Made by a program: the position numbers and the translations under genes | In this document: piece by piece, positions 30,163-64,000 of the stretch | Layout of the letters: the number at the start of each line of letters is the position of its first letter | How positions within the stretch are numbered: position 1 is the first letter of the stretch | The notes under the pieces: generated by a model | The model's input: only the letters and a program-made list of their open reading frames with translations | Databases searched by the model: none | Told to the model about the DNA's origin: nothing | Source: Macrostomum lignano | Lineage: Eukaryota | DNA length: 64,000 nucleotides | NCBI GenBank assembly: GCA_002269645.1 | Contig: NIVC01000746.1 | Span: 310,001-374,000, forward strand | Direction of reading: 5' to 3'

Positions 30163-30834
30163 TTGCCAAACCAAAAGAGTTTATTTTTGAGTCTCTCCCT
30201 TTGAGTTTTGAGTTTCATTCGAGAGTACTTTATAAGTATTTTGTGAATCAATCAATTGTAGTTTGTAATTTTCCATAAGTCATTTGTACATTTAATTGGA
30301 TGGCTTTAATGTAATTCATAACAACACAAGATCGACGATCAGTTTTTATATTTTTAACGAATTGGTTTTACTGCATCTGCGAGTTGTATGCTCATCGCCA
30401 CCAGCTCACTACTTATAGTAGGCAGTAGTTTTACAATTAGTCTATTGTTTTTTCACTGTAAGTTCTGATTTTTTCCTGATGCTTACTATTAGAATTCATG
30501 CACAGTTAGAGCTGTTGTCCTTTTTACTACTATTTCAAGGTTGTCAGTGGTATATATAGCACCCATATTTTTGCTATACGTTTTTGCTTACTTTTGCGCC
30601 AAATAATTAAGTATACGTCTCTGCTTTTCCTTTTTTGAAACCCAATTTGCTCAAAATTTTCCCTTTAATAATAATTTTGTAATGGATTTTCAACTTGTAA
30701 TTTCTATAGACTTATGTAGTTTTTTGTTTTATTTAATAATTGTTATTCGTATTTAAAATTCTAAATTCTGATGCTAGTGGCTCTGTGAAATACAGAATTA
30801 AATGGTAAATTAGCCTGAGTGTAGTTGTTAAAGT

Positions 30835-32372
30835 GGATTGCTAGTATAGCCAGTACAAGGAATAGTATGGATTGCTAGTATAGCCAGTACAAGGAATAGT
30901 ATGGATTGCTAGTATAGCCAGTACAAGGAATAGAATGGATTGCTAGTATAGCCAGTATAAGGAATAGAATGGATTGCTAGTATAGCCAGTACAAGGAATA
31001 GAATGGATTGCTAGTATAGCCAGTATAAGGAATAGAATGGATTGCTAGTATAGTCAGCATAATGAATAGAATGGATTGCTAGTATAGCCAGCATAATGAA
31101 TAGAATGGATTGCTAGTATAGCCAGCATAAGGAATAGAATGGATTGCTAGTATAGTCAGCATAATGAATAGAATGGATTGCTAGTATAGCCAGCATAAGG
31201 AATAGAATGGATTGCTAGTATAGCCAGCATAAGGAATAGAATGGATTGCTAGTATAGTCAGCATAATGAATAGAATGGATTGCTAGTATAGCCAGTACAA
31301 GGAATAGAATGGATTGCTAGTATAGCCAGTATAAGGAATAGAATGGATTGCTAGTATAGCCAGTATAAGGAATAGAATGGATTGCTAGTATAGTCAGCAT
31401 AATGAATAGAATGGATTGCTAGTATAGCCAGCATAAGGAATAGAATGGATTGCTAGTATAGCCAGCATAAGGAATAGAATGGATTGCTAGTATAGTCAGC
31501 ATAATGAATAGAATGGATTGCTAGTATAGCCAGTACAAGGAATAGAATGGATTGCTAGTATAGCCAGTATAAGGAATAGAATGGATTGCTAGTATAGCCA
31601 GTACAAGGAATAGAATGGATTGCTAGTATAGCCAGTACAAGGAATAGAATGGATTGCTAGTATAGCCAGTATAAGGAATAGAATGGATTGCTAGTATAGT
31701 CAGCATAATGAATAGAATGGATTGCTAGTATAGCCAGCATAATGAATAGAATGGATTGCTAGTATAGCCAGCATAAGGAATAGAATGGATTGCTAGTATT
31801 GCCTGCATAATGAATAGAATGGATTGCTAGTATAGCCAGCATAATGAAAAGAATGGATTGCTCGTATTGCCTGCATAATGATTAGAATGGATTGCTAGTA
31901 TAGTCAGCATAATGAATAGAATGGATTGCTAGTATAGGCAGCATAATGAATAGTATGGATTGCTAGTATAGCCAGCATAAGGAATAGTATGGATTGCTAG
32001 TATAGCCAGCATAATGAATAGTATGGATTGCTAGTATAGTCAGCATAATGAATAGTATGGATTGCTAGTATAGCCAGCATAATGAATAGTATGGATTGCT
32101 AGTATAGTCAGCATAAGGAATAGAATGGATTGCTAGTATAGCCAGCATAATGAATAGTATGGATTGCTAGTATAGCCAGCATAATGAATAGTATGGATTG
32201 CTAGTATAGCCAGCATAATGAATAGTATGGATTGCTAGTATAGCCAGCATAATGAATAGTATGGATTGCTAGTATAGTCAGTATAAGGAATAGAATGGAT
32301 TGCTAGTATAGTCAGCATAATGAATAGTATGGATTGCTAGTATAGCCAGCATAATGAATAGTATGGATTGCT
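30835..32372. repeat. 34-bp minisatellite upstream of UGDH
   Basis: atggattgctagtatagccagcataaggaataga units, ending ~40 nt before the UGDH ATG. Confidence 0.95.
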
Positions 32373-32410
32373 AATCCAGCCAGCGCGTTAATCCGCAGCG
32401 GGCGGCCGGC

Positions 32411-35400: not shown

Positions 35401-37210
35401 TTACTGTCATCCACCATTGAGGGACACTGTATGCAGTTTCGTGTGTTACTGTCATCCACCATTGAGGGACACTGTATGCAGTTTCGTGTGTTACTGTCAT
35501 CCACCATTGAGGGACACTGTATGGAGTTTCGTGTGCTACTGTCATCCACCATTGAGGGACACTGTATGCTGTTTCGTGTGCTACTGTCATCCACCATTGA
35601 GGGACACTGTATGCTGTTTCGTGTGCTACTGTCCACCCAGGTGTACGCTCGCTGGGTACCTAAAGAGCGCCTGGTAACAATGAACCTGTGGAGCTCCGAG
35701 CTGTCCAAGCTGGTTGCCAACGCCATGCTGGCCCAGCGCATCAGCAGCATCAATGCGGCCTCTGCAATCTGCGAGGCCACGGGAGCCGACGTGTCCGAGG
35801 TGGCCCAAGCGGTTGGCGCGGACTCGCGTATCGGGCCGAGGTTCCTCTGCGCCAGTCTGGGCTTCGGCGGCAGCTGCTTTCAAAAAGACGTGCTCAACTT
35901 GGTGTACCTGTGCGAGTGCCTCAACCTGCCGGAGGTGGCCAGGTACTGGGAATCCGTGGTGACGCTCAACCAGTACCAGAAGTACCGATTCGCCGACAAG
36001 ATTATTGTCGACCTGTTCAACACGGTAAAAGGCAAGAGGATCGCCGTGCTTGGCTTCGCATTCAAGAAGGACACCGGCGATACCAGGGAATCTCCTGCTA
36101 TTGACGTCTGCAGGAGGCTGATTGATGAGGGCGCCCTGCTCAGGGTCTACGATCCCAAGGTTTGTTGGCGTGGATCGCTGTTGATCTAGGTGCTGACTTT
36201 TCTATTGTCCTCTCGACCCCTTCCATCTCTAGGATCCGCCCCCATCAATCCACTTCCTTTTACTATCCACCGACAATCGGCTCCCATCCGAAACCCACCC
36301 CCTCCCCACAATCTGCTCCCCTCCATGACCCCTCAAAAATCTGCTCCCATCCATGACCCCTCAACAATCTGCTCCCATCCATGACCCCTCAACAATCTGC
36401 TCCCATCCATGACCCCTCAAAAATCTGCTCCCCTCCATGACCCGCCCCCCCCCACAATCTGCTCCCCTCCATGACCCGCCCCCCACAATCTGCTCCCCTC
36501 CATGACCCCTCAAAAATCTGCTCCCATCCATGACCCCTCAACAATCTGCTCCCATCCATGACCCCTCAACAATCTGCTCCCATCCATGACCCCTCAACAA
36601 TCTGCTCCCATCCATGACCCCTCAAAAATCTGCTCCCCTCCATGACCCGCCCCCCCCCACAATCTGCTCCCCTCCATGACCCGCCCCCACAATCTGCTCC
36701 CCTCCATGAACCCTCAACAATCTGCTCCCCTCCATGAACCCTCAACAATCTGCTCCCCTCCATGAACCCTCAACAATCTGCTCCCCTCCATGAACCCTCA
36801 ACAATCTGCTCTCCTCCATGACCCGCCCCCCCACACCACAATCAGCTCCCCTCCAAGACCCCCCCCCACAATCTGCTCTCCTCCATGAGCCCCCCCCCGC
36901 AATCTATTCAAAGGTGGCGAGCTCCCAGATTCGATTAGACCTGAACCAGCCCGAGCCGGATGAGGCATCTGATGCAGCTGTGCTAACAGTGTGCTCAGAC
37001 GCCTACTCAGCTGCCGAGGGCGCTCACGCTGTTGTCATCTGCACCGAATGGTCGGAATTCTCCCAGCTGGACTTTGGCCGCATCTTTGCCAGCATGGCAA
37101 AGCCGGCATTCGTGTTCGACGGGCGCAACGTGCTGGACCACGAGGCCCTGCTGCGGATCGGCTTCCGGGTGCGCGCCGTTGGCAAGCGGCTGGACTGCGG
37201 CGGGGTTTAA
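32411..37210 (+). CDS. UGDH: UDP-glucose 6-dehydrogenase; 4 exons, 481 aa
   Basis: Exons 32411-32790, 34645-34894, 35641-36159, 36914-37210 (1446 nt, in frame). [35 protein letters not shown], catalytic [31 protein letters not shown]. Confidence 0.97.
32872..34560. repeat. 30-bp minisatellite in UGDH intron 1
   Basis: ctatttcctagaatcccgtttcacccttat units. Confidence 0.95.
32959..33130. mobile_element. Hairpin MITE (CATACATGCGCAAC family) inserted in the minisatellite
   Basis: 172-bp element that is nearly palindromic; CAT...ATG ends; 8-bp duplication ATCTATTT at 32951-32958 and 33131-33138. Confidence 0.8.
34945..35635. repeat. 45-bp minisatellite in UGDH intron 2
   Basis: atgcagtttcgtgtgctactgtcatccaccattgagggacactgt units running into the 3' splice site. 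Confidence 0.95.
36300..36900. repeat. ~28-bp C-rich minisatellite in UGDH intron 3
   Basis: aatctgctcccatccatgacccctcaac units. Confidence 0.9.
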
Positions 37211-42864: not shown

Positions 42865-43790
42865 GACCGTCAAGTGTGACCGTCAGTTAATAATGTCACC
42901 CGTCAAGTGTGACCGTCAGTTAGTAATGTCACCCGTCAAGTGTGACCGTCAGTTAATAATGTGACCCGTCAAGTGTGACCGTCAGTTAATAATGTGACCC
43001 GTCAAGTGTGACCGTCAGTTAATAATTTTACCCGTCAAGTGTGACCGTCAGTTAATAATTTTACCCGTCAAGTGTGACCGTCAGTTAATAATTTTACCCG
43101 TCAAGTGTGACCGTCAGTTAATAATGTGACCCGTCAAGTGTGACCGTCAGTTAATAATGTGACCCGTCAAGTGTGACCGTCAGTTAATAATTTTACCCGT
43201 CAAGTGTGACCGTCAGTTAATAATTTTACCCGTCAAGTGTGACCGTCAGTTAATAATTTTACCCGTCAAGTGTGACCGTCAGTTAATAATGTGACCCGTC
43301 AAGTGTGACCGTCAGTTAATAATGTGACCCGTCAAGTGTGACCGTCAGTTAATAATGTGACCCGTCAAGTGTGACCGTCAGTTAGTAATGTGACCCGTCA
43401 AGTGTGACCGTCAGTTAATAATTTTACCCGTCAAGTGTGACCGTCAGTTAATAATGTGACCCGTCAAGTGTGACCGTCAGTTAATAATGTCACCCGTCAA
43501 GTGTGACCGTCAGTTAGTAATGTGACCCGTCAAGTGTGACCGTCAGTTAATAATTTTACCCGTCAAGTGTGACCGTCAGTTAATAATGTCACCCGTCAAG
43601 TGTGACCGTCAGTTAGTAATGTGACCCGTCAAGTGTGACCGTCAGTTAATAATGTCACCCGTCAAGTGTGACCGTCAGTTAATAATGTCACCCGTCAAGT
43701 GTGACCGTCAGTTAATAATGTGACCCGTCAAGTGTGACCGTCAGTTAGTAATGTCACCCGTCAAGTGTGACCGTCAGTTAATAATGTGAC
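42865..43790. repeat. 33-bp minisatellite
   Basis: cccgtcaagtgtgaccgtcagttaataatgtga units; an inverted unit occurs at ~43910-43935. Confidence 0.95.
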
Positions 43791-44344
43791 CCTCAAATGT
43801 GCCAGTCACAAAACGGTCCAAGAAGATAAAAAGACCATCATTGTTATCCTTGTGTTAGGTTGATTTTAATAAAAAATAAACGTCAAAAAAGGAACAACTT
43901 GGGTATTAGTGACCGTTTACTTGACGGTCACATTAGTCAGAATGCGACCTGTCCCAGTTTTATACGGGAACTGCTTAAATAAATCTATTCAAAATGTTCC
44001 ATTAAATGTGTTGTGTCTTTTGTGTTTTACTCTCTTAGTTTCTATCGATATAATAATAGCTATCATTAGCATATTAGACTTGAAAAGCTTAAATTTACTG
44101 ATTTATTCTGTTGTCTGGTTTCCTTTAGTTTGCACTGCGTCAGGATCCTATTGGCTAGTTCGTTCGTAATATGCAATTCTGAAACTATAAATATATTCGT
44201 CATCTTTAATTAAAGCAATTTTCTACGCTCATATTTATAATTGCCTCTGTCATCGTTTTGTTTCACTCTGACATTTCGAAGATAGCTTTTGTAACACGTT
44301 TCTCTGAATATTGTCTGTAACTAGTGCTGTATACCGGCTTAAGC

Positions 44345-45607: not shown

Positions 45608-48600
45608 TTAGCTTTCGTCTGGCTTGCTGCCTACAGCGCTCTTCATTCTGTCCAGTTGGTACAGCTGCACTTGCGGATGCGTCTTGACAATGTTCACCCG
45701 TGCGCCAGTGGACTTCGGTCCCCACGGATAGGCCAGGTGCAGGAACAGGTGCCTGCCGACAGTCTGGTTGCTGATGCCGCTGTCCGGCTGCCACCGGTTC
45801 GAGAGAATCGTCTGACAGGCCTCCCGACGCCAGCTCTGGTCGGGCGAGCCTGTCATGGGGCCGGGTGTGCAAGAGTCCATCATCAATCCATGGTTGATTC
45901 ATCAATGGAGTGTCACTTTAATATTTCTCTCCAATCGGTTCGATTCCCGGTGGATTCTAGCTTTCTTCTAGACTTTGGTGGATTCAAGGCCTACTTAAGT
46001 AGTAGAAGGACGCAACACTCGAAATCTATGCAAAATTTTTGAAGGCCACTTTTCGCCGAAAAATGCACTACGGAGATAGGAATTTTTCATTTTTTCAGCG
46101 CAAAAATTGTCATGGCTTTTGATAGGAGGCAGATCCAGTGTTCATCTTTTGATATGCCGTGCCTTTCTTACAGCCTTTTCTTCCTATGAATATCAATATT
46201 CGAGTAGCTATTATCAGAAAGGCACAACATATCAAAAGATGAACATTGGGTCTGAGTCCTATCGAAAGCAATAGCAATTTTTTGTGCTGAGAAATGAAAA
46301 CTTCCTATCTCCGTAGTGTATTTTTCGGCGAAAAGTGGCCTTCAAAACTTTTTCCATGAAACGTGAGTGTCGTGTCCTGTATATATGTTACAATACTTTA
46401 GTTGACCTTGGATGGATTCTTGGGTAAATTCGATCTAAGCCTGTTGGAAGCAACAGTGAAAGTTGATGTACCGCACACTGCACCCACCCGTAGAAAACGA
46501 CGGTTTATCTTGGAAAGTAATTTCACGAAAAGTAACTTTTGATTGGTTAATTTCGGTTAACAGACTGGTAAATTAATGTATATTTACCCTTCGTAAAGTA
46601 ATGTTTATTTACCTAAAATTACGCTAATCAACCTTCAGGCTATTACAGTTAATTAACCCCCAATATTAACCCTAGTTTTCAACGGGCAACCCTCCAACTC
46701 TAGCTACCGCAATTCCACCCTTATGCCGCAAGATCTACATGTAACTATTGTGCCGCGCCGCAAAGTTCACCGAGCGCAACTATAGTGCACAGTGCGTTCT
46801 CACCCAGCTTGGCCCGGCGGCACAGCCTCGGAAAATCCTGCCATCGCGTGTCCATCATCGGGCTGAACACTTCCGGCTCCAGCAAGTTCACCGCGTCTTC
46901 CCCGGTTCGATTCCGGTTAGTGCGAATCCAAGCGGAGTACACGCTGGTGAGCAGGTCGGGACCGGTAGTCACGTGACCAGCCGCGGAGTCCATGGCGGAC
47001 AGCACGGCCAGGAAGAATGGATGCCGCGGTGCGGCGCCCATTGCGCTGTTCATCGCGCTGAACTCGCGATTGTAGAGAATTCGCGCCTGCTCCCTGCGCT
47101 CCTGGTCCAGGAATGCCGGCCCGGCCGAGGCCAGGGCGGGGAAGAACGGCCTGACGCACTGCACGTCCATGTCTATGTAGATGCCTGCTGGGGTCGGGTG
47201 CGAGGTGGTGGCATTCTTGAGCTTTTCTGTAGGTTCTAGGGAGACTATGGGATTCTTGAGGTGACTATGGGATTCTTAGGGTCATTTTGGGGATTCTTAT
47301 GGTGACTATGGGATTCTTAGGTGACTATGGGATTCTTGGGGTGACTATGGGATTCTTAAGGTCATTTTGGGGATTCTTATGGTGACTATGGGATTCTTAG
47401 GGTGACTATGGGATTCTTAGGGTCATTTTGGGGATTCTTATGGTGACTATGGGATTCTTAGGGTCATTTTGGGGATTCTTAGGGTGACTATGGGATTCTT
47501 AGGGTCATTTTGGGGATTCTTGAGGTGACTATGGGATTCTTGAGGTGACTATGGGATTCTTGAGGTGACTATGGGATTCTTGGGGTCACTATGGGATTCT
47601 TGGGGTGACTATTGGATTTTTGGGGAGACTATTGGATTCTTAGGGTCACTATGGGATTCTTGGGGAGACTATTGGATTTTTGGGGAGACTATTGGATTCT
47701 TAGGGTCACTATGGGATTCTTGGGGGAGATTATGGAATTCTTGGGGGAGATTATGGAATTCTTGGGGTGACTATGGGATTCTTGGGTTGACTATGGGATT
47801 CTTGGGGTGACAATGGGATTCTTGGGGTCACTATGGGATTCTTGGGGTGACTATGGGATTTTTGGTGTGACAATGGGATTCTTGGGGTCACTATGGGATT
47901 CTTGGGGTGACTATGGGATTCTTGGGGTCATTTTGGGGATTCTTGGGGTGACTATGGGATTCTTGGGTTGACTGGGATTCTTGGGGTCACCATGGGATTC
48001 TTGGGGTGACTATGGGATTCTTGGGGTGACAATGAGATTCTTGGCGTGACTGGGATTCTTGGGGTCACCATGGGATTCTTGGGGTGACTATGGGATTCTT
48101 GGGGTCATTTTGGGGATTCTTGAGGTGACTATGGGATTCTTGGGGCCACCATGGGATTCTTGAGGTGACTATGGGATTCTTGGGGTGACTATAGGCTTCC
48201 AAGGGGAGACTATTGGATTCCTGGGGGAGACTATTGGATTCCTGGAGGAGACTATTGGATTCCTAGGGGAGACTGTAGTTGTAAAATTCCCGTGAGATTC
48301 TCGGGGAGGTAATGAGATTCCTGTGTAGTTTTCTCCAGTTTTGGAGACGGGCTTCCTGGGTAGACGCTGACACTCCTGAAAAGGTCATAGGGATTCCTGG
48401 GGAGACTATGCGTGTCCAGCAGACAGTGAGGTGTTGCAATCCGGAGTCCAAAGCCGTGAGCAAGCAAAGAGATTTCTGGGTCTGTGTTTGGGAATGGTTC
48501 GACTGAAATTTCAACTTTGCTCGCGTCCCACTTATAGTAGTCGGGTTTATTGGAGAGTCAAATAAAATTTACTCTGCTGACTGACCTCCATAGTGGTACA

Positions 48601-49106: not shown

Positions 49107-50342
49107 CGCGGGTTCCTGTATCGGTGTTGGTGGATTGCTATCAAAAATGCTATTTCCTCATGACACATTTTCTCATCCTCAATGGGAATTGTAATATTTT
49201 GATTCATCTACCAATCAGCAACAGCCAATAAAGTTTGTTCTCGCTTGTCAGACATTTCGCTTCTCGCATCGACACTATATGCTGCTACTCGTAGTAGGAT
49301 AATTAGCAAACAAAATTTAAGACAAACTATTAGAACTCGTGCGACTTGATTTACAAAGCATTGAAAACGAGTGTCTTTGTAGACTTGACTGTCTGGTTAC
49401 ATTGAGCAGATGATGCGGCGCTTCCCAGTGGCAGCTTCGCGAAATCCCATGTCGTTCTTGCCATGAATAGACAGCAAGTCAGCTGCAGACATCAGCCACA
49501 GCCAGAACGGAGTTTTCACGAGGCGAATTTGTCTCCACCTAAGTTGGAGACAGACAAACAATCCATTGTTTTATTTTTTATCCATGATCTTCATAAGTCA
49601 CTTGACCACCGCTGTGGCCAACGTATTACAGAACTCGACCACTTGACTTTAGCTATTGGTTGATTGGTTGGCAAAATTAAAATAACTTCAGACTTCAGAC
49701 TAATTTCAGACTTAAATAAAGTCTGAAATTAAAGATACGAGAAAACTGATCGGGGTAGCTTTGATCCGTCCAACCCTCGCACACAGCTCCCCCCCCCCAC
49801 TTCATTCCTCAACTCAAGTCTGCCGCCGCGTAGCTGAGTTGCGTCACTCGCAAGATTGAGAAACCTTACCTGCACTCTCAAAAGTGGCGATCAGAGGCGG
49901 AATCTTCTGTGATGGCGACTTTTCGATGTTGCTGTGTGTATGAATCAAGACACTGCATGGCGGATCCCTGAGGGAGGACTCGACCGAGAAAATTATGGGG
50001 CATCCTGAGCATACGGCTTTGATATTTGACTATATTTGGAGGTGCTACCTCTCGAAAGTAAATAGTTTGAGGACCAAACCGACTGCATCTGGGAGTCGAT
50101 CGTATATACATGTACATTGGACAGAATGAGTAGCAATCAGCAACTTCGATTCTGACTGACTATTTGAGCAACTAATGCGTCAGGCAATATTTAACCAAGA
50201 CAAACTGACCGAAATGAATCACAAAAATGGAGCATTTAATTACTTTCACCTGACAAACAATCATCTATCTCAGCTAAAAACCTCAGCAATCGATCCAGCA
50301 AAGCGAGCTGTTGAATTCGAATTCTATCCGACATACCAGCAA

Positions 50343-52281
50343 ATGCTGCAGTTTAGGATAGCTTGTCAAAATTCGTCCGCCCACGGACTGCCCCGGGCTG
50401 CCACCAGCGACAAGCCCGTCTACGTGAGAGTGGCCTGGCTGCTGCTCTTCCTGCTCTTTCTCTGTCTGTTCGTGCGAGGTCTCGTCGGATTCGTGAGCAA
50501 GCTGCAGAGCAGGCAGGTGAGCTCGTCTCTGGAGGCCAGCTCGGTGCGCTTCCAGTTTCCTGACGTGTACGCGTGCTTCGAGAGTCCGGTGTCGGGCACC
50601 TACGCGGCGAGCATGAGCGCAGACACTGTCAGGGAGTTCGAACGAGGCTGAACGACACGCAGACCAATTTCGATTTGTGCTACCAGAAACTTCTTCAGAA
50701 AGACCTGATTACAGGGACAAACCATATGTCTAGAAGTCCTCTAGCGAAGTTCAGAAAAAGCACCAGCTTGTTCCTTCCAGGGTCTCTGCCGTACCGGCTG
50801 CTTGTTGACGCGCTGGCGCACCGGCCTGAGCAGTCAGTCATGTCCAGTCAGATTCTGTTCACAAACAACCGGGGAATGCCGACATCCGAGAGCGTCGAAT
50901 TCAGCAGTTTCTACCACCTGAATTACCTGCGCTGCTTCCGCTGGAGACTCGCGCCGTCGACTCAAGAGAAGCTGCTGCGGAGCGGCACCACAGCCGGTCT
51001 CGAGCTGTCGCTGCTGCTCGATGGCAACTCTACATCACTTGTTTCGGTCAGCGGCCGCACTGTGGATTCCAGAGTTTACTCAGAGGCTCCAATGGACTCA
51101 GAAGATCCAACACACTGGAGCCCTGTGCACCTGTCCGATTGGAACTTCTTTGCACCGGAACAGAGTCAGCCAGACAGAACCTCCGGACTGAGAGTCTTCC
51201 TGACTCCTCCCGGCGAGTACCCGACCGACTTCGCCAAGTCCTACCTGCTCGCTCCTGGAAAATTTCATTTGGTAAAGTACATTACATTTCAACTGAGAAT
51301 ATACAGCCCAAAAAATGAATGAGTTCTGGCTTTCCTTTTAGATGCAGTTGTCATTGACTGAGCAACTCACAAAAGAAGATTCAGAATGCATCAACTATCA
51401 TCCGTCCGTACAATTTCTGAATAGTTACGATGAGGCACCGTACACGCACGAGTACAGCTTCTCCTACTGCTACTACTATGAGTATCACAAGCGTTGGCAG
51501 GATCAGTTGAGAAACTATTCGGGCCCGACCTCGCCGCTCCCGTGGCCTTTAAGGGGTAAAAAGAGTTACTTGAACTTTTCTGGACCTGCGGAAGAAGTGA
51601 CGGAGCTTCAGACCGACTGCAGTGTAAATTCTACGGATGTGGCAGACGAAATAGAGTAATTTTTGTTTCCTTCTTAACTTAAAAAAATTAACAGTATACA
51701 ACTTCCATGGATCTACATGGTTTTCCAATTCATTTCGAAGGCTGCAGGAGACCCTGGAAGTCTGCCGGGGTCGCGACCGCTGCAAGCTGCTGCAGTATGA
51801 CGCGACCATCTCCAGCGCCGATTGGCCCGCTCCATCATCGCTCAGCACCTACCTGGGAACCACCGTGGCCGCTGCCAGAGCCTCGGCCATCAGCCGGGGT
51901 CTCTCGGTTCCCGCGCTCGACTTTCTGGTCAGCAACGCCAGCAGTGCAGACGTTGCCGCCTACGTGCGATCCAACCTGTTGAAGCTGCAGATCCGACCGA
52001 GCCGAGTGCAGTGCGACCGCCTCATCTACGCCGTCGACTACGGCCTTGAGAACTTCATTGCCGATGTAGGCGGCATCTTGGGCATCTACCTGGGCATGTC
52101 GCTGCTCACCGTGTGTGAGCTCATCGAGCTCATCATCGATGTAGCGAGGCTCGGCGTCGGCAAGGGCGACTCGAAGGACCGGCAGGCCGACAGACCGCGC
52201 ACGGCCAGGGTGGAACCGGAGAGCGGCACGGCGGACGACGTTGCGGCTTCAGAAAATAACACTGGCGGGAAAGCTGCTTAG
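50343..52281 (+). CDS. DEG/ENaC (amiloride-sensitive) channel subunit, copy A; one 1-nt frameshift
   Basis: Exons 50343-51271, 51342-51655, 51741-52281. SAHG pre-TM1 motif, TM1, FPDVYAC, TM2 FIADVGGILGIYLGMSLLTVCELIEL with GxS filter. One nt is missing near 50643 relative to copy B; 594 aa if corrected. Start assigned by homology to copy B; an upstream in-frame ATG exists at 50175. Confidence 0.82.
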
Positions 52282-52599
52282 GATTTGTCGGATTTGATGA
52301 ATAAAATTTCGAGCATAGAATTTGCATGAGCTCTTTTAAACTCATGGATTTTAATTACATGGCTTAGGAATTTTTAGATATCTGATGAATGTGCCCCTCT
52401 CTGCCTGCCCTTGAATTGTTTCCACCACCCCCTTTGTTTGTGAGTTACTCGCCCTTGCGTGCAGCTCTATCCACCCCACCCCTGTGTTGGCTCCGTCTAT
52501 CGTTGTACGAGTAAACCGCACACATCTTCCCTTTCATTCTTTCTCAGTCGCCCATTGTATCTGTGCCCCGAAAGCCTCCCTGTGCCTGATTAGCGGAGA

Positions 52600-53090
52600 C
52601 TCGGTCAGAGAAGCCCCTTTTTTGTTGTTGTGCTTTTTTGCCATAAATCTCGTATAAAAATCAAAAATACACAACAGAATAAGCTTCCACAAAGATAGGA
52701 AGCTTTCCCCCAATAGTAAGCTTTACTCAATAGCAAGCATCCCCCGATAGCAAGCGTCCCCCAAAAGCAAGCATTCCTTAGATAGCAAGCACCCCCCGAT
52801 ATAATCCCCAAATTGAAAGCATAGCAAAACAATTCCCTCCGTTAGCCTTGACATCTCAGCAATTCCCCAACTCCCCCAGTTCCCCGATTCCAAAACTGAC
52901 GATAAATAAAAGCATGTTGTGATGCAGTCTTTATCAGAATCAGAATTCAGTCAGTCATCTTATTGTGCAGCATTCTTTCAATGCATTTTCAAGTCAAAAA
53001 GTCTGCTTGACCTTTGCAAAAAGCATGTTTTTCGGTATATTTAATCCCTCTAGCATTGAGAGATTTCTTAGCCACGACACATGTAACATA
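52600..53090 (-). mobile_element. Degraded Helitron fragment related to the FDXR-intron family
   Basis: Reverse-complement matches to the Helitron 5' region (gctaagaaat...aaaacatgctttttgcaaaggtcaagc), the gctgagatgtcaaggct motif and the 17-bp repeat. Confidence 0.7.
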
Positions 53091-53436
53091 GACAGATAGA
53101 CAGCCCATTTTTATTATTCGATGAGCTCTTATAGCAGGAAGGAAGGACGAAGGAAGGATTGACTTTTTGAGTGGTAGTCAAGTAGTGTAGTACCAGTGGA
53201 AGCTCAAAGCCCAGCCTACTGTTACTATTAGTACTTAAAGCTTGTGGTCTCTGGGCTGGTCGCGTAACTACGCCCCCAACCCCCCCCCCAAACAGTCGGC
53301 ACTCTACCAGTCGGTATGTTACCCTATCTGAGTACTCCGTATTTGTTTAAATCATGCAGAATTGCATTATTTGCATTATCCACAGAACTGAATAACAAGT
53401 GTGTAATTACTATATATTAACCAGAATTATCGAGTA

Positions 53437-53512
53437 TATTGCCGACGTAAGGCGGTGGGCATCTACCTGGGCATGTCGCTGCTCACAGTGAGCGAGCTCA
53501 TCGACCTCAGGA
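53437..53512 (+). pseudogene. DEG/ENaC TM2 relic
   Basis: attgccgacgta...gggcatctacctgggcatgtcgctgctcacagtgagcgagctcatcga matches TM2 of both copies, with indels. Confidence 0.75.
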
Positions 53513-54012
53513 CCGCGAGGCCGACTGATAGCGCAGGGGGCACTAAGAGTTGAGTAGCTGGCGACAAAATTGCAGAATTTACCTTCATCGGATACTGTTT
53601 TAGATTAATAGGTTAATCCAATACCATTTACCATGAATTCGGTTGTAAAATGAGCCTTGAAATTTAATTACTAAAAATTAATTTGCATTCTCTTTATACT
53701 ACTAACCGCTGCCGATTACCGACCGGAATCTGAACTCCAAACTAGGCTCAAGCACACTTCTCACCTTTGGGGAGATTTCCAGGATTTCCTGGATGGGGAA
53801 CATCCGGGATCTTAATCCTAGCAGAAGCCTGGGAATTTTATAACTTCCCCTGTATAATCCTTCAAAACAGTTTCGCTTCGTCACCTATGTTCATTGCACG
53901 AATACAGAACTGGTTATTGCGCCTCGGTAGCTCTCGTGTGCACCCAGAATCCAGTTGCTGCGGTAAATACGGCACTATACAGCCTGCAGCTTGGCTTGTA
54001 AATGTAAGTATA

Positions 54013-54624
54013 CTTTTTTGCGATTGAATTCGTCCAAACTGCAAAACCTTTCGTCCACTAACGCTTTCTTAATGGGAGCTAAATTTAGATTATACCATAG
54101 ACAACTGTGTTCACGCAAAACGGTTTATCCAGTTTGTAAAACATTTCATCTAAACCCTTCGACCAAACAGCTAACAGCTAAACGGAGCGACTTTATTTGA
54201 TATCACGAGATATTGAACAAAGCAAAAACAGTGTCTCTTGTTAGACTGTTTGTTCAAAATGTCTTCGTAGTCCAAACAGCGGCCGTAGTAACCCACAGTG
54301 TGATTGGTCCATTGCTGGCACTTCTCCTGTGTAATCACGTGCAGTGCAGCTTCGACCTCCCTCTTCAAAATGTGCATCCGCCAGGCATGCAGATATGCGT
54401 TGCTGTAGCTGTAGTGGTAGCAAAAGCGAACTGTCAATTGGGTGTTAACTATGGTAGGAACAGTACACTCGGTCTGTAGTCTAGGGGACGAAATGTTTTA
54501 CAAACTGGATGAACCGTTTTGCGTGAACACCTTTGTCTATGGTATAATCTAAATTTAGCTCCCATTAAGAAAGCATTTGTGGACGAAAGGTTTTGCAGTT
54601 TGGACGAATTCAATCGCAAAAAAG
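54013..54624. mobile_element. Non-autonomous Tc1/mariner (IS630-like) element with ~140-bp TIRs
   Basis: Long inverted repeats 54013-54150 and 54488-54624 flanked by TA. Internal minus-strand peptide EVEAALHVITQEKCQQWTNHTVGYYGRCLDYEDI resembles (from memory) the C-terminal end of IS630/Tc1-like transposases. Confidence 0.6.
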
Positions 54625-54935
54625 TATATTGCGTGTAAGTATAATTGTAAATATGTACTAAACATTCGTATATTACATCGACTGAATGGAAGAAAGAGAG
54701 AGTCTGAGGTTACTGCTGGCATCCTCTTTTGCGCTGATGTCTATGGCCAAATGATCAGTTTGGCTGCCGTTTTTTCGTCCATGTCTATGGGCAAGACCGA
54801 TTCTACTGCAAATCTACCGCTGCTGCAGACGATACAATTTTAATTCTATTTGAACACTGTATTATACTGATTAAAGTATTGTATTATTCAAATCTGTCGT
54901 TGCTGTTATTATTCCTGCAGATTGAGCTGCTTGCA

Positions 54936-56086
54936 ATGCGCTCAAAAGTCGTTGCATTTCTGTTGCTACTTTCGCTGATCTTCGCGGGCCTTCTATACAG
55001 GCATCAGGGATCACTGTCATTGATGCGGCCGGAGGCCATAACACTCAGACTTGCGGGAATTCGTGGCGTCTGCCACGACTGGAAGTGCAAGACAGCTTTG
55101 CACTCGACGATGGACAGAACCGACCGAGTGCCATGGATCCGGCACATTCTGTGGAAGTCCGACAGAGTGTCCGCCTACTTTGCAAAGCAGCTCAAGTCGT
55201 GGACCGACATTCACCCGGGCTGGACCTACGTTCTGTGGCGCGACGCCGACCTGGATAGATTTGTTGCCAAGCACTACACAGGTGCATTGCAGAAGTTCAG
55301 GTCGCTAAAGGAGAACATCATGCGAGTGGACATGGCTCGCTACTTGATTCTCCACCACGTGAGCGTAAATGTCTGGATGTTTATTAGCCATCATTATGCA
55401 AACTGACTCACCCGAGCTCGACCTTTCAGTTCGGAGGAGTTTACGCAGACCTGGATTACACGCTGGTGCGTTCGCTGGATCCCTTCCTCAAGTACACTGC
55501 CGTAGTGCCTATCGAGACTGAGGCTTTCGCTCTGCTCTACTTCGGCATGAGCAGCTGGCCACCGGACCTACTTGGAAACCCGGCGTTCATGTTTTCCGTG
55601 TCGCAGCATCCGTTTTTCTTTTTCTGCATCCTTCAGCTGATGGCGAATCCCGCCACCGATGTGTTCACGTTCGCTGGTCCGCTAGGACTCTCAGCCATGC
55701 TGAAGCGGTACGCCAGTGACCGACCGGCCGTCTCCGATCTCAGCGATGTGGTGTTCGTGCCGGTGTCAAGAGCGTTCTCCTCCTACGCAAACAACAGCCT
55801 ACGAAGCAGCACGAGCGAGTACAAGGGCGGCATCATGGACGCTCTGAACAGGCAGTGCGATGCAGTTCGAAAGTCGACCGTCTCTCCGCCAGAGTTGAAG
55901 TCCTACTGCAAGGATGTGTACAACCTGGATCCCATCACCGACCGCAGGGAGCTCGCGTTCGCCATTCACGACAGCAACAAGGCGCGGTCGTCCTACGACA
56001 AGCGAGGCTCGCCACAGTTTTACAAAGACTCTGTGAGCATTCGGACCGTAGTGCCGAATGTTCGGATGGCGAGTGAGATTATTTAA
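54936..56086 (+). CDS. GT32 (DxD) glycosyltransferase B, type II membrane; 2 exons, 359 aa
   Basis: Exons 54936-55358 and 55430-56086 (71-bp intron). N-terminal TM, VPWIRHILWK, IHPGWTYVLWRDADL, MRVDMARYLILHHFGGVYADLD, GNPAFMFSVSQHPFF, TFAGPLGLS. Confidence 0.88.
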
Positions 56087-56454
56087 CTGGATTGTAAATA
56101 CTCTAAAAATGATTGATTTTGCGTTGGATTTTAGCATTCTTTTCTGTTGGTACAGCAGAGCCTGTAAGGTTGTTCAATCTGACTCATGCAAATCGTATAA
56201 ATATCATGTACTAGTGTGTAGCCGAAGGTCCTACCATTGGACCGTATTCGTATGTTGGCGTATTTGCTGCTAATCACTCAAACTATTTTTCACTATTAAT
56301 TATTTACTTTGAATAAAACTACTTCACGGGATTCTATCCACGCTACTAAAAAAATCGGTTGTCCGATTGTAAAAGTTGGTTGTTTGTTGGTGTTTTTATG
56401 CCAAGGGCAAGGACTACTTAAGTAGATATACAGAATACTTCAGTCGTCCTTGGC

Positions 56455-56911
56455 CAAGGGTCGGAAAGTTTTTTACCTCATCCTCAAGGGCCAGATAGAG
56501 AAACTAGAATAGGGAGGTGAGATGTAATAGAGAAGAGAAAAAGGAAATAGGAGAAAGGAGAGGCGAGGGAATACTCGTAAAGGAGCAAAGAGGAGACGAG
56601 AGGAGAGGAGAGATGAAAAGGAGAGACGAGAGACGAGAGGAGAGAGGAGAGAGGAGAGAGGAGGAGAGAGGAGAGAGGAGGGGAGAGGAGAGAGGAGGAG
56701 AGAGGAGAGAGGAGGAGAGAGGAGAGAGGAGGAGAGAGGAGAGAGGAGAGAGGAGAGGAGAGAAGAGGAGAGGAGAGAAATGAAAGAGAGAGAAGATTAA
56801 GAGAAGAGCGCTGAGAAGAGACAATAACCTTGAGTTTCATGGACTTGAGGGTCGGATAAAGAGGCTTCGCAGGCCGCATGTGGCCTTCGGGCCGGAGTTT
56901 GCCGACTCCTA
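56455..56911 (+). mobile_element. hAT-like non-autonomous element with an internal GA-rich repeat
   Basis: 5' CAAGGGTCGGAAAG; 3' GGCCGCATGTGGCCTTCGGGCCGGAGTTTGCCGACTCCTA, typical of hAT ends; (GGAGA)n core at 56500-56820; no TSD seen. Confidence 0.55.
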
Positions 56912-59352
56912 CATGTATTTAATGCAATCCACGAAGCTGCCGAAAATATATGCAATCGGAGTAATTATTAGAATTACTATGGAATTATTGGTGTCCGATC
57001 AATATCGATATCGGCCACCTCCCATTGGCTGGCGCCCACCCTGCATCTCTCCCTACCCCTCACCCCACACCCCACTTTGCCCGCCCCAGCGCCTCATCCG
57101 CTACCTCGCCCTCTCACTCTAAATCCCACCCTCTCTCTCCCTGCCCCTCACTATACAGCCCGCAGCACCCAGCGCCTCCCCCAGCGCCTCCCCCAGCGCC
57201 TCCATGTAGGTAAGCCCCCTTCCCCCGACAAATGCATGCCCCATGTAGGCCACTATTTGCTGACAAAAGTAGGTTCAGTGTATTTAATACAAAGGTAGGC
57301 ATCAATATTGGTATAAGCCGAGCAAATGTATGCATAAATAGTGGAGCTAATTTGCATATTATATTGGCTCAGACGAATAAATTTTGGCGTAAATATTGAC
57401 CACAAAATCTTCATAGGCGCATAGGCATAAATTAGACACAGTGGAATAAATTTCGGCATAAATATGTGTGACATTGTGGTGTTATGCTAGTGTATTCTTA
57501 GGTTATTATTCTTAGTGCATTCTTAGTTAGTTATTATTTGCGAGCGCGCTGATTGGCTAGTGTGTTTCAGTGCATGTGCACTGCCCCGGGTAGTTTGTTT
57601 TCGTCTCACGCGTGGCTAGCATGGTGGGGTCTGGGCAGTCAGGCCAACCACCCTTTCTTTAGTCCTAGGGTAAATAAACGTGTCTTATAAAGAGCCCAGT
57701 TGTATGATCTCCCGGCGGGAAATTTGAGGGCTGTGTGAGCTTGTGTGAGCTTGATGTGTTCCTTATTACCAGTCCTCAACTGTAATCCAAGGACTACTTA
57801 ACAAAAAATGGTTAAGTAGTCCTTGCTGTAATCAAGGAACAATCACTTCTAGCTCAGTAGCTAGGCAACCCAGTAAGTCAACAGAAGGTATTCAATTACC
57901 TTGAGTCCTTATGAGATATCTCTTCAATGTGGATCTCGTGTAGATCTCGTCTGTAGTCACTTCTGACTGTCGTTCGTAGGTCGGGTCCAAGTCTTTTTCC
58001 TTCTTCAAATAGTTCCGGCCGGATTCGGTTGCTCGGACCAATAGGAAGCTTCCAAATTAACAATGGGATCCCTGCGCCAAACTGCGGTCTGAATTAAGCC
58101 TCCTTCTTCTGGCAGTGCCTCTATGCACTCTAGGTATAGCTCCGGAAACCACTGATAGTCCTCTAAGATCTATCAGGGGCAGTCCTTCTGGAGAATGCAA
58201 CCAGTAGAGTCTAAACAGACTCAAGAGTCTCAACAGACTCAAATAAACTCAAGTCTCAATAGACTTGAGCGAGACGTCTCTAACACAACGGGCGCAAATA
58301 AGGAAGGCTTACCGCAACAACTCGACCGAGTCTCGATTGACTTGGTTGATCAGGAAGTCCTCCTAAGGCTTCCTCTTCGGAGCTTCTCCTATCGTCGGGA
58401 GTTGGCTCCTGGTCCGCTTCGGACCACTTGTATTTATAGGCGAATTTTTGATCCAAAATAGCATCATTACAATTCACGTGTTGCGCTAAAAGGGGAAAAT
58501 GGCTCATGGCGTATTTTTCTGGTAACATCTTTTCCTGGTAGCGTGATTCATTCAAAATTTAGGTGCACATGCGTGTACTTACTTACTTATAGTAGCATTC
58601 TACGATTAACTTCTTTTTCCTTTTTTAAGGGAGGTAGAACACTCTACAAGCTTGTGTGAGCTTGTGTGTCATTCACGCGATATGTTCATGTGTAAATTTC
58701 TGAGGTGTGCGCTTAAAAACTCACACAAGCTCACACAGAAAGCTCACACAGCTCTCAACTTTCCCGGCGGGCTGGCTCTCTACGTTTTTCTACGCACTCA
58801 ACTCAATTACAAGCCTTGAGCTTCAATCTATTAGCTCGTACAGTATGCATATTGAAGCTATTTTAAGCGAAAAAGATGCAGGTACAACGATCCCACAGGG
58901 TCCGGGTCAACCCCTCGTGAGACAGGCATTCAGGGGACCCCAGAGAGAAGCAAAAGCGAGGTTCTACAGTAGCTGAGCGCCGGCCAGCAAGGTGTTTGGC
59001 CAGCAGGGAGTTAATCGCGACGTTGCTTCGATGCTCTATTAAGAGCAGCATTCTCAAGGTCAAACAATGCGATTCGACTGCCAGCGATTCCGACTAGCAT
59101 CTTGAAGGGTTCTGAAGTACTTTTGGTTGTTTCTGGCTTCTTCTCTCGTCTTTGCGGAAGCCTTCTTATTAGTTCTTAGTAGCGTTGGTGCTGCCACCAG
59201 TTCCTTCAGGTCTCGGCCTTCGGTGAGGTGAGCTTCCAGTCGGAACGAAATAACGAAGTCGACGAATTCAGCACGACGTGCAGATTTGCAGCTCAACGAA
59301 TGGGCGTCTCGTCAGCAGATCCTGCCGGGCTTGGAGGTGGATGGGAGGGCTA

Positions 59353-60046
59353 TGTTAGCCTCTCGTAGGCTCGGGGCTTTAGAATGTGTCAGTCAGCAGG
59401 GAACTCAATGTACGCAGACAGAACGGCTAGTCTCGGAGAACTCGGAACTCGGAAACGGTTAACAGCGGAAGGCAAACGAACCCTTGACGGAAACAAGGGG
59501 GAGAGGGGTCCTGTTTATAGCCGCGCTCGCCAGACCTCGTGACTTGTTCTATGTTTAGAACTGACGTCACTTGAGGTCTAGCTCCGGGCAGAGTGCGCCA
59601 GGCTGTGGTTCAGTATATATTTTTAGAGCTGACGTCACCCTCCGCCTTAGAGAAGGCAGGGTCTGCGGGCAAAGTGCACAGGGCCTCATGACTCAGTATC
59701 TATTTTTAGAGCTGACGTCACCCTCCGCCTTAGAGAAGGCAAGAGCCCCGAAGCACGTGATTCACCCGTAAACAGGACCAGCGAGTGCAGTAAACATGTT
59801 TACTGCACTTTAGGACTCCAAGAAAACAAGGCAAGGGAACAAGGGAAAGGGGACGGGAGCGAAACAAGGACAGCCCACAGCAGAGAAGCTGAAGGCTGAG
59901 AACCGGAGTACAGAAAACGAGCAGCAAAGGGGGAGAGGGCGGCAAACAGACAAACGAAGGGAGGCGGGAAGCTGACCAGCGGCAGACAGCAACCCCGGGC
60001 AAGGGCAAGGGCGAGGGAAACTGCTGACAAAGTGTGACGCCTAACA
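59353..60046 (-). promoter_or_regulatory. LTR-like enhancer/promoter (3 CRE sites, AP-1 site, TATA, 26-bp palindrome)
   Basis: TGACGTCA at 59562, 59630, 59713; TGACTCA near 59689; minus-strand TATAAA at 59519-59514; boundaries TGTTAG...CTAACA. No TSD or second LTR found. Confidence 0.4.
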
Positions 60047-60576
60047 TTAAACTAGCGGCTCACTACAGTTTGAACAAAGGACCTCTTGCGCCCAGAAGGG
60101 CTACGCTAGACCCCAGGCCTAGACTGGCTTGTCGTTGGCTCGGGAAATTTTGGCATTCAATTGCTAATTACTTACTGCATTGGAAGATTTATGAGACGAA
60201 ATTGTCAGCACTACTGGCAAATTATTTCCTCAAACGGTCACTTTTTGTGAGGATTTCCGTATCCCTAATACATTATTTTGCCAAATGGAACTTTGTTTGC
60301 TGAGCTGGTCAAATAATTGCTGGTGCTGTTAAGTACCTCGGCTTGAGTATGAAGGTCTCAGAGCTATTCCGTGAATACTCAATTCAATTAGTGACGCTTA
60401 GTTACGTTTGTCAGCTGCCAACCAGACCAGTGCAGGCAACACAATAGGTATATAGCCGTTCCCACACGTGCACTGTCCTGGGAGTCGTCAAGTGGCTTTG
60501 CAAAATCGCTAAAAACAACAGACTATCAAACTGAAACCGAAAAATCAGAAAATTCAACTTATTCAAGACTGGACTG

Positions 60577-62883
60577 ATGCTACGCCTAAAAAACGCCTGC
60601 GAGAACTTGTCCGCCCACGGACTGCCCCGGGCTGCCACCAGCGACAAGCCCGTCTACGTGAGAGTGGCCTGGCTGCTGCTCTTCCTGCTCTTTCTCTGTC
60701 TGTTCGTGCGAGGTCTCGTCGGATTCGTGAGCAAGCTGCAGAGCAGGCAGGTGAGCTCGTCTCTGGAGGCCAGCTCGGTGCGCTTCCAGTTTCCTGACGT
60801 GTACGCGTGCTTCGAGAGTCCGGTGTCGGGCACCTACGCGGCGAACATGAGCGCAGACACTGCCAGGGAGTTGGAGGCGAGGCTGAACGACACTGAAAAC
60901 TTCTTTTTTTCGTGCCACAGAAGTAGTATACCCAACATCGACTCGTTGCCTCCCCAGGCAATCGCATACATGTTTCGTAGCACATTGAAATTCATGAGCT
61001 TCTACTTCCCAACCTCCCTGCCATACCGGCTACTGGTGGACGTCCTGGCTCACAGAGCTGAACAGTCAATCATTTCAAGTGAGATCGTGTTTATGAACGA
61101 CTTGGGCGTACCGACCTACGAGAGCGTCAACTTCAGCAGTTTCTACCACCCGAATTACCTGCGCTGCTTCCGCTGGAGACTCGCGCCGTCGACCCAAGAG
61201 AAACTGCTGCGGAGCGGCACCTCGGCCGGTCTCGTGCTGACGCTGCTGCTCGATGGCAACTCTTCATCTCTTGTTCCGGTCAGCGGCCGAACCGTTGCTA
61301 CCAGAGTTTTTAAACCGAATGAATCGAGCTTCAGTCGTACATACAGTGGCATCCGGTGCCGCTGTCGGACTGGTCTCTCTCTCTTCACGACTGGAACCGC
61401 TCGGATCGTAGCTCGGGAGTCAGAGTGTTCCTGACTCCGCGTGGCGAGTATCCGACAGACTTTTCAACTTCCTACTTGCTGGCCCCTGGAAAATTTCATG
61501 CGGTAATTTTTGCGACCGGGTGACTAAGCTACGAGCCAGTAATGGCGCCATTCGAAGTGCCAATAGTACCAATTTGTTCGAATATTCAATTGCGAAATAA
61601 ATATCATGTATCTTTTCCCAACTTTTCGTCGTTTACCCAAGCCAACAGTTTGACTTGAGAGGTGGTTGTAGCCTAGTGGTTTGAGTGTCGGATTCACAAC
61701 AGAAAGGTCGGGTTCGATCTCGACCCACTTTGTACAATTTGTGTTCTTAAGCAAGACCACTAAACTCTGCATTGTTTCAGCTTACCCAGCTGTTAGAATG
61801 GACCTACTAGCATTAGCTGGGGTAATTGAGGGTGTGCGAGTGGCGACCCCAATGTGCAGCGATTGTTGGTTGTGTATCTGCCTTTTAGGGCCTGTGGAAT
61901 CAGTCATTATTTATTTATGATTGCTAATATTGAGCCAACGAATTCACACGTCCACTTTAGATGGACGTTTCCATGTTGGAACAGAGCCGGAGCAAGGATG
62001 CCATTGATTGTCTTGAAAGCCAGCCATCCGTTCAATTTGACAATCCCTACGAGGAAACTCCATACACCCATGAGTACAGCTACTCCTACTGCTACTACTA
62101 CGAGTATCACAAGGAGGTCCAAGCACGCAAAAACGTTTCAGGCCCGAATTCACCGCTGCCCTGGTCGTTGCGTAATAAAGCGTTTATCCTGAATATGACG
62201 GGAGCCGGGGAGGTATTCTGCGGTACTAACAATGGCACCGGCAGTCCCGTGGATCCAGTGGAGACAAGGTAAGTCTGTTTTAACATGCTGTCATGAATGA
62301 AAAATGCATAAGAACAGAAATTTCTGCGCGGCATTGAAGATTTGGTGAGGTGGCTCTGGAAGCCTGCCGGGGTCGCGACCGCTGCAAGCTGCTGCAGTAT
62401 GACGCGACCATCTCCAGCGCCGACTGGCCCGCTCCATCATCGCTCAGCACCTACCTGGGGACCACCGTGGCCGCTGCCAGAGCCTCGGCCGTCGGCCGGG
62501 GTCTCTCGGTTCCCGCGCTCGACTTTCTGGTCAGCAACGCCAGCAGTGCAGACGCGGCCGCCTACGTGCGATCCAACCTGCTGAAGCTGCAGATCCGACC
62601 GAGCCGAGTGCAGTGCGACCGCCTCATCTACGCCGTCGACTACGGCCTTGAGAACTTCATTGCCGATGTAGGCGGCATCTTGGGCATCTACCTGGGCATG
62701 TCGCTGCTCACCGTGTGTGAGCTCATCGAGCTCATCGTCGATGTAGCGAGGCTCGGCGTCGGCAAGGGCGACTCGAAGGACCGGCAGGCCGACAGACCGC
62801 GCACGGCCAGGGTGGAACCGGAGAGCGGCACGGCGGACGACGTTGCGGCTTCAGAAAATAACACTGGCGGGAAAGCTGCTTAG
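60577..62883 (+). CDS. DEG/ENaC channel subunit, copy B; one 1-nt frameshift
   Basis: Exons 60577-61502, 61961-62268, 62340-62883, with the same intron positions and phases as copy A. One nt is missing within ~61306-61349; after the shift the frame reads WHPVPLSDW...SGVRVFLTPRGEYPTDF...LLAPGKFH like copy A. 592 aa if corrected. Confidence 0.82.
61659..61880 (+). mobile_element. tRNA-derived SINE (different family) in intron 1 of DEG/ENaC copy B
   Basis: A-box TAGCCTAGTGG, B-box GGTTCGATCTC, followed by a central tgtgttcttaagcaagac...acccagctg segment resembling conserved invertebrate SINE cores; accounts for about half of the extra length of the B intron (458 bp vs 70 bp in A). Confidence 0.7.
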
Positions 62884-64000
62884 GATTTGTCGGATTTGAT
62901 GAATAAAATTTCGAGCATAGAATTTGCAAGATTTTTTCAAACTTTTGGATTTAAGCACATGGTTTACATCTTTTTAATAGATATTGACTGTCCGAACGTG
63001 ATTTCTTTGTTGTTCCTGTGTAAAAGTTTTATTTTAGGTCAAAACTTAGTCAAAATACTTTAAGCTGCATATCTTTATATATGATCATTTAATACAAAAA
63101 GCAATAAACTTGTTTGTCGTTTCTTGATAACTCTATGTATGTATATTCCGTTTGTTCAAAATTTTAAATTATTAGAGTACCAATAACCAGAACTATCAAG
63201 TACCGGTTTTTTACATTTTTGTAAGTCAAATCTCACTTTAAATAGTAAATTATAACAAATAATTGCACACAAGTAGTGTTGCAACCGTTTCAATAAGTAT
63301 TCTATTACAATTGTGTTATAGTAAAAAATATATGAATTGTACGAGTACTAGTGTATTATTTTCTCATCTCATGTTATATATTTATTTGCAAATCTTCGTT
63401 GATTGTTTTGAAGAAAATTTATTTATTGTTCAAAATTATTTATTCTTCATACAGTGATAAAGTGTATTCCTATGTGTTTATATTATAGTGTATTTTGCTG
63501 CGAGTTTTTTTCTGAGAAACTACTGTATTTTAAGCTTGCGCCAATTTTGTTTTATTAAAATGATTTTAAAAATATTCAACCAGTAAAATTTGTTAAAAAC
63601 TTGTTCGAAATATAGTTTAAATGCAAGGCTAAATCAGAGCGAAGAATCACATTCTCCCTCCCCCAACTCTCGGAGTCAATCTCTTGAATTTGGTTTTTCA
63701 GTCTGTTACTCTCGAGACACAAGACCTTTGGAAATACGCTCGTAAGAAACCACAGTATTGTGAGAAAATCCATTATACTAAAAATCAATACTCAAAGTGA
63801 AATTTTTCCTAATTTGTTTTTCTTAAAAATCAAAGCATCAGGAGGATCGATAACCGTTAAGAAACTAAAACTATCTCAGAAGTAGTTGTAAGCTAAGCGC
63901 CTTAAGCAGTATAAACCGCCTATTATAGCCGCGTGACCCTCTGTTCCTGGAAAACGCCCGAACAGAGATATCAAAGTCTCTTATAGGAGCAACTACATGT

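Follow-up and report, generated by a model that had tools for sequence, protein, structure and literature searches.

Near-identical tracts between two diverged DEG/ENaC paralogues of Macrostomum lignano point to recurrent interlocus gene conversion

Interlocus gene conversion between tandem paralogues has textbook examples in the human gamma-globin genes HBG1 and HBG2, the red and green opsins, RHD and RHCE, and CYP21A2 and its pseudogene. Here we describe two genes of the DEG/ENaC channel family, copies A and B, from the flatworm Macrostomum lignano, which lie in a 64,000-nucleotide (nt) stretch of contig NIVC01000746.1 (assembly GCA_002269645.1, positions 310,001 to 374,000, forward strand; hereafter the window, whose numbering is used throughout). 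Similar to the textbook pairs, A and B are located on one chromosome in equal orientation and a few kb apart, share short tracts (~150-600 nt) of near-identity amid old divergence, and have tracts of raised GC content that end where homology falls, i.e. at introns and flanks. In both settings, moreover, sequence can pass between a gene and its disabled counterpart. Unlike those pairs, both A and B are frame-broken as assembled, and the gene family and animal lineage are new for the phenomenon; a literature search turned up no account of gene conversion among DEG/ENaC genes. We think it likely that A and B are old tandem paralogues whose mosaic arose through recurrent interlocus gene conversion.

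Both copies are encoded on the same strand, spaced 10.2 kb apart, and consist of three exons each, separated by GT-AG introns (70 and 85 nt in A, 458 and 71 nt in B), with exon phases identical between copies.

50343-52281, + strand: DEG/ENaC copy A, exons 50343-51271, 51342-51655 and 51741-52281; frame-corrected product of 594 amino acids
60577-62883, + strand: DEG/ENaC copy B, exons 60577-61502, 61961-62268 and 62340-62883; frame-corrected product of 592 amino acids

The frame-corrected product of A is colinear with M. lignano homologues, and its splice sites and phases are as in copy B.

A first-pass annotation of the window, made by inspection, had named the two genes DEG/ENaC paralogues, and this assignment was borne out by a full-length Pfam match and by the characteristic motifs and transmembrane segments (TM1 and TM2). 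The spliced product of B matches Pfam ASC (PF00858) across profile positions 2-455 of 455 (E 2.2e-37, 129.6 bits, cut-off 23.6), and the frame-corrected protein (591 residues when the placeholder residue is omitted) has only two Kyte-Doolittle peaks, at residues ~24-55 and 517-551. Both copies carry the HG motif SAHGLPR (residues 12-18) as well as FPDVYAC (residues 72-78), with H14, P73 and C78 almost invariant across the clade alignment. TM2 (IADVGGILGIYLGMSLLTVCELIEL) aligns with the FaNaC pore helix (ADIGGTLGLWMGISVLTIMELMEL), with GMS as the filter and an Ala before DVGG, where the filter and 'Deg' positions are those we assume from MEC-4 and ASIC. FaNaC is the best match among solved structures and has the same topology and TM2 motif (GMS in A and B, GIS in FaNaC). 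A profile of the clade matches FaNaC, ENaC and ASIC chains, including FaNaC over its full length at E 6.8e-54 and 7.5e-48 (PDB 7yvb and 8on7); the single-sequence match to FaNaC is weak (E 5e-11) and covers the TM2 region only.

The closest relatives of A and B are found in M. lignano itself. An exhaustive HMMER search of 1.8 billion representative proteins returned 12 hits at E<1e-3, 11 of them from this species, and only this search brought relatives to the surface, as a word-indexed search that used the composite B protein as query gave no match. A and B are colinear with the M. lignano DEG/ENaC proteins over their full length and share with them cysteines, the HG motif, FPDxxxC and GIYLGMSLLT, but are at most 43-45% identical to them overall. 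The best relative is A0A1I8GD92 (P0001; 43% identity), for which no encoding contig is on record. Others include Mlig033047g1 (P0008; ~40%), whose locus L001 on contig NIVC01004250.1 is the nearest M. lignano locus and, unlike the A/B pair, has a single copy. Judged by sequence, A and B belong to a flatworm-specific (Macrostomum-type) DEG/ENaC clade. Domains were mapped by profile alignment to FaNaC together with ASIC topology; an AlphaFold2 model built from a 4-sequence alignment had a mean predicted local distance difference test (pLDDT) score of 42.7 and was not used. Three M. lignano DEG/ENaCs from a small branch beside the FaNaC clade, which may or may not share the clade of A and B, gave no currents evoked by FMRFamide or Macrostomum peptides (Dandamudi et al. 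2022, PMC9234716). That A and B act as chemoreceptors or neuropeptide receptors, as proposed in the first-pass annotation, is conjecture.

Alignment of the two copies revealed a mosaic that a repeat finder, blastn and a global MAFFT alignment saw alike, with three putative conversion tracts (T1 to T3).

50375-50641, + strand: tract T1 in A (partner B 60609-60876), comprising the HG motif, TM1 (~50418-50495), FPDVYAC and the ectodomain start
60609-60876, + strand: tract T1 in B (partner A 50375-50641)
50900-51057, + strand: tract T2 in A, older (partner B 61132-61289), in the ectodomain core (FYHxNYLRCFRW...LLLDGN)
61132-61289, + strand: tract T2 in B (partner A 50900-51057)
51762-52326, + strand: tract T3 in A (partner B 62364-62928), almost all of exon 3 plus 45 nt of 3' untranslated region (UTR)
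62364-62928, + strand: tract T3 in B (partner A 51762-52326)

Identity begins 32 nt past the ATG and collapses after ~50641, recovers partially in the middle of exon 1, is low in the remainder of exon 1 and in exon 2, and resumes ~20 nt inside exon 3, from where it continues through the stop codon to 45 nt of the 3' UTR (52326/62928). The T1 core (50375-50610 versus 60609-60844) is identical at 236 of 236 positions and is followed by three mismatches at 50611, 50629 and 50639. T3 differs at 8 of 565 positions (offsets 60, 96, 127, 130, 191, 192, 217 and 373), of which seven fall in the first 219 nt (T3a, 51762-51980) and one in the remaining 346 nt (T3b, 51981-52326). These two blocks had been reported in the first-pass annotation with exact coordinates and counts, and the heavy divergence it described for the intervening ectodomain, exon 2 and introns, with identity ending abruptly at the N-terminus and in the UTR, is likewise seen in our alignments. 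The third tract, T2, is an ectodomain island with 10 mismatches in 158 nt compared to ~30% in its flanks, and presumably corresponds to the beta-ball and palm beta6, as judged from the FaNaC alignment and ASIC topology.

T3 encodes the late ectodomain, including ~105 codons upstream of TM2 that align with the lower palm and knuckle of FaNaC, TM2 itself (~52068-52143) and the C-terminal tail, and extends into non-coding sequence with an AATAAA signal at 52299-52304. Its 45 nt of 3' UTR contain no mismatch, while the adjacent non-coding DNA is diverged. Beyond 52326/62928, a weak gapped homology (~70%) persists up to ~52375/62975 and then ceases; the T3 edge is thus a true tract boundary, since it ends within sequence that still aligns at background level. 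Neither the two introns nor the flanks of A and B could be aligned by blastn or MAFFT.

To quantify divergence, the coding sequences (CDS) were codon-aligned with one placeholder base per copy to hold the frame, and synonymous and nonsynonymous differences (proportions pS and pN; corrected rates dS and dN) were estimated by the Nei-Gojobori method in sliding windows and per segment. The aligned CDS differ at 345 of 1755 nt, and the longest identical runs are 236, 155 and 143 nt, compared to a maximum of 68 nt (mean 29) in 10,000 permutations. At third codon positions alone, runs of 108 and 88 were observed against a permutation maximum of 46. The runs of identity are far beyond chance.

T1, 50375-50641: no silent changes at 66 silent sites
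T2, 50900-51057: dS 0.13
T3a, 51762-51980: dS 0.07
T3b, 51981-52278: no silent changes at 74 silent sites
All remaining coding sequence: pS 0.64 (dS ~1.4, saturated), dN 0.42, amino-acid identity 51%

Silent-site identity between these same-genome paralogues is therefore clustered by both the Nei-Gojobori and the permutation analysis. Taken together, the converted segments have a pS of 0.037 (243 silent sites) and 96% amino-acid identity, compared to 0.64 (168 silent sites) and 51% for the unconverted segments. The patchwise gene conversion postulated in the first-pass annotation is supported by these data: silent divergence is 0-0.13 in the tracts and saturated outside, dS is clearly not uniform along the genes, and one tract enters the 3' UTR beside diverged non-coding DNA.

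Could the near-identity be maintained without any exchange, through extreme purifying selection on the nucleotide sequence imposed by RNA structure, a regulatory element or codon bias? The near-identical blocks do coincide with the most conserved protein segments, and their GC content at third codon positions (GC3) is high (T1 0.84, T3 0.79-0.80, T2 0.74-0.79, elsewhere 0.56-0.64). However, the same segments are only 69-79% identical at the nucleotide level to the M. lignano homologue at L001, and as this is what constraint alone yields, the 99-100% identity between A and B needs recent exchange. Selection of this kind would also have to account for the absence of changes at 66 (T1) and 74 (T3b) silent sites next to a pS of 0.64 elsewhere, for identity running through 45 nt of UTR, and for tracts of graded age, and we give it almost no credence.

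Alternatively, the blocks could be artefacts of assembly or polishing, caused by collapse of the two copies or by short reads mapping to both paralogues. The perfect identity of the T1 core over 236 nt would fit such an artefact, and the 1-nt frame breaks in A, in B and in the nearest M. lignano locus (described below) make consensus errors plausible. However, T2 and T3 are not collapsed copies, as they carry 10 and 8 scattered differences, and the blocks sit within unique, well-diverged sequence at two loci with unequal intron sizes. Cross-mapping cannot work at a background identity of 65-80% and could merely sharpen identity that conversion had already made. An artefactual origin of the blocks is accordingly very improbable in our estimation.

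We propose instead that a three-exon DEG/ENaC gene was duplicated in tandem long ago, and that the silent sites, introns and flanks of the resulting copies, A and B, have diverged to saturation since then. Patches of one copy may later have been overwritten in several separate non-reciprocal exchanges, in which DNA breaks would have been repaired on the paralogue, at a distance of 10 kb, as template. Since tract divergence is graded (0%, 0.3%, 3% and 6%), several conversion events rather than one are indicated, and we infer at least four of unlike age, with T2 (~6%) followed by T3a (~3%), T3b (~0.3%) and the T1 core (0%). Conversion would by now persist only in near-identical, conserved, GC-rich cores, namely TM1 with the palm start and first palm strands, the beta-ball and palm core, and the late palm, knuckle, TM2 and tail. 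Diverged finger and thumb segments and introns would no longer pair, and tract ends would mark this loss of homology, which in the coding part affects the finger and thumb segments and the very N-terminus, and in the non-coding part intron 2 and the distal UTR. Such conversion would be self-reinforcing, as the tracts sit where constraint keeps the copies pairable and stop where homology is lost. The GC bias of conversion, for which elevated GC3 is the signature to be expected, may also have raised GC3 inside the tracts.

At all eight T3 differences (51822-52135 versus 62424-62737), copy A has A or T where copy B has G or C (sign test p ~0.008), and four of the eight, read from the MAFFT alignment, are CpG-to-TpG/CpA transitions. 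This suggests either one-sided GC-to-AT decay of A after conversion or GC-biased fixation in B; with 68-70% identity to the tracts when aligned by MAFFT, L001, the only outgroup at hand, is too distant for polarising these differences with certainty. The near coincidence of T3 with exon 3, to ~22 nt past the AATAAA, also led us to consider RNA-templated (cDNA) conversion, which was rejected as unnecessary: both T1 and T2 terminate within exon 1, and the T3 boundary would be no different if the donor were genomic and its intron diverged.

Several points weigh against recurrent conversion as we describe it. The perfect 236-nt block is possibly a patch equalised by short-read polishing across the paralogues, and the high GC3 of the TM-coding segments could partly reflect codon and amino-acid composition. 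The comparison comprises two copies from one genome, and polarisation of the events with the distant L001 is unreliable.

The first-pass annotation had gone further in reading the patches as homogenisation of the gating and pore segments of a repertoire of interchangeable subunits. Under such selection, conversion of pore, gating and assembly parts would be favoured for co-assembly and disfavoured in the ligand-sensing finger and thumb, which would diversify. The most diverged regions are indeed the finger-aligned segment (codons ~100-175; pN 0.5, with indels) and the thumb-like exon 2, and TM1, TM2 and palm strands are among the homogenised parts. Outside the tracts, dN/dS is ~0.3 (from two sequences, with dS saturated), which implies that both copies were constrained for most of their history. 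However, this ratio indicates purifying, rather than positive, selection, and expression and heteromerisation are conjectural. Conversion is moreover not restricted to gating and pore segments, since the T2 ectodomain island and the ~105 ectodomain codons of T3 have been converted too. In the youngest tracts all four differences are nonsynonymous, which, like the one-sided T3 changes, hints weakly at relaxed constraint. Given the frame breaks, which leave neither A nor B with an uninterrupted open reading frame (ORF) as assembled, it is unproven that the two genes form a working repertoire with interchangeable subunits. Selection for homogenisation is not required, because homology-limited conversion gives the same patchiness without it. 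We regard selected homogenisation as unlikely and favour conversion whose patchiness would be mechanical.

The spliced CDS of A and of B each have a length of 2 mod 3, and in neither copy as assembled does an uninterrupted reading frame cover both TM segments. A one-base frame break as assembled is certain for A and probable for B.

50640-50651, + strand: frame break in A, a 1-nt deletion relative to B at ~50641/50642 (GAGTTCGA-ACGAGG versus GAGTTGGAGGCGAGG)
61323-61347, + strand: probable frame break in B, an interval in which reading has to pass from the 60400 frame into the 60402 frame

The change in A is a deletion in A, since B and the M. lignano protein P0001 are colinear there without a gap. 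It leads to a TGA at 50649-50651, while the conserved RLNDT and the remaining ectodomain run on in the -1 frame. Tiny introns that might rescue the frame of A were sought by eye and rejected, as only GT..AG intervals of 11 and 20 nt fit and the stretch is coding in B and P0001. The frame change in B is either a 1-nt indel or a short intron at an unusual position and with a poor donor. Removal of any of 24 GT..AG intervals (23-92 nt) would bring B back into frame, but none of them has the GTAA-type donor shared by the four real introns, and in A the corresponding sequence is open and coding; rescue of B by a short intron is unlikely. Neither break lies in a homopolymer, and a single placeholder base per copy restores a full-length ORF with no further stops in both genes.

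In each copy, the break results either from an indel in the assembly or from real pseudogenisation that is very recent or still polymorphic. Mlig033047g1 at L001 has a single 1-nt break as well, just after the HG motif in a TT/TTT run (~9727-9800, GGTTGTCC), and because of this break its annotated protein begins at an internal Met downstream of TM1 and lacks TM1. Three of three genes examined in the subfamily (A, B and Mlig033047g1) thus have one single-base frame break. As a check of the assembly indel rate, the exons of a UDP-glucose 6-dehydrogenase (UGDH) gene in the window showed no frameshift over ~830 nt, a length too short to decide the matter.

The break in A (50641) coincides with the 3' end of T1, and that in B (61323-61347) lies ~35-60 nt beyond the 3' end of T2. 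Two breaks placed at random would both come to within 20-30 nt of a tract edge with a probability of about 0.02-0.04, and with two events the coincidence is only a lead. Imprecise resolution of conversion or template switching might thus have made the breaks, with the copies acting as mutual repair templates and the pair flickering between dead and alive, an idea we hold to be quite doubtful. If the breaks are real, A and B are disabled at different places, and each could still serve as a template for restoring the other.

Besides A and B, the only DEG/ENaC-related sequence found in the window is an isolated TM2 relic, and the two copies are not directly adjacent, since an unrelated glycosyltransferase-like gene intervenes.

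53438-53509, + strand: isolated DEG/ENaC TM2 relic of ~72 nt (..IADV..GIYLGMSLLTVSELIDL) with similarity to A and B
54879-56086, + strand: unrelated glycosyltransferase-like ORF pair with a DXD motif, between A and B (Pfam PF04488, E 3e-5)
~61665-61900, + strand: extra sequence in B intron 1, an alignment gap relative to A

The relic sits 1.16 kb downstream of A and is 86% identical to A and B over 77 nt and 93% over 54 nt, with no recognisable remnants of any gene around it. It may be what is left of a third copy, or else a small patch that a repair event brought in. The insert in B intron 1, of ~390 nt and absent from A, accounts for the greater length of this intron in B and for the change of the A/B register from 10232 to 10602-10622. 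By eye, the head of the insert resembles tRNA A and B boxes or a short interspersed nuclear element (SINE), a likeness left unsupported by ARAGORN and Rfam, neither of which found anything in the window. No second copy of the insert was found within the window.

Non-coding repeats occur upstream of both copies, at 49722-49941 upstream of A (85% identical to 14803-15012 of L001) and at 59156-59331 upstream of B (76% identical to 8015-8193 of L001). Their L001 counterparts both flank the DEG/ENaC gene there, and the repeats probably represent transposon families common to these loci. Just upstream of the glycosyltransferase-like gene, a pair of inverted repeats (54009-54150 and 54487-54628; 142 nt, 96% identical, 336 nt apart) looks like a miniature inverted-repeat transposable element (MITE) or hairpin. 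Positions 1-48300 of the window contain unusually many long minisatellite arrays with periods of 14-45 nt and up to 172 copies, which together make up ~1/4 to 1/3 of the sequence.

9173-12638, 14486-18409, 20908-22449, 30834-32384, 33131-34570, 42867-43808 and 47239-48274: examples of minisatellite arrays
22493-23284: ORF resembling, by eye, the C-terminus of an adrenodoxin/ferredoxin reductase, without a Pfam hit
34673-36165: exons of UGDH, up to 75% identical to database proteins

A further minisatellite array (34948-35633) is located in an intron of the UGDH gene and extends into an exon ORF.

Conversion between A and B is a known mechanism and opens no new one. The pair provides a clean, quantifiable case of graded, GC-biased and homology-limited conversion in a lineage and channel family for which we found no earlier description. 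It also carries three warnings. Concerted evolution can mislead phylogenies of expanded DEG/ENaC families when these draw on conserved blocks rich in TM sequence, and mosaic identity is not evidence for functional modularity. Gene models in such assemblies need read and RNA support, since all three subfamily genes examined show a single-base frame break.

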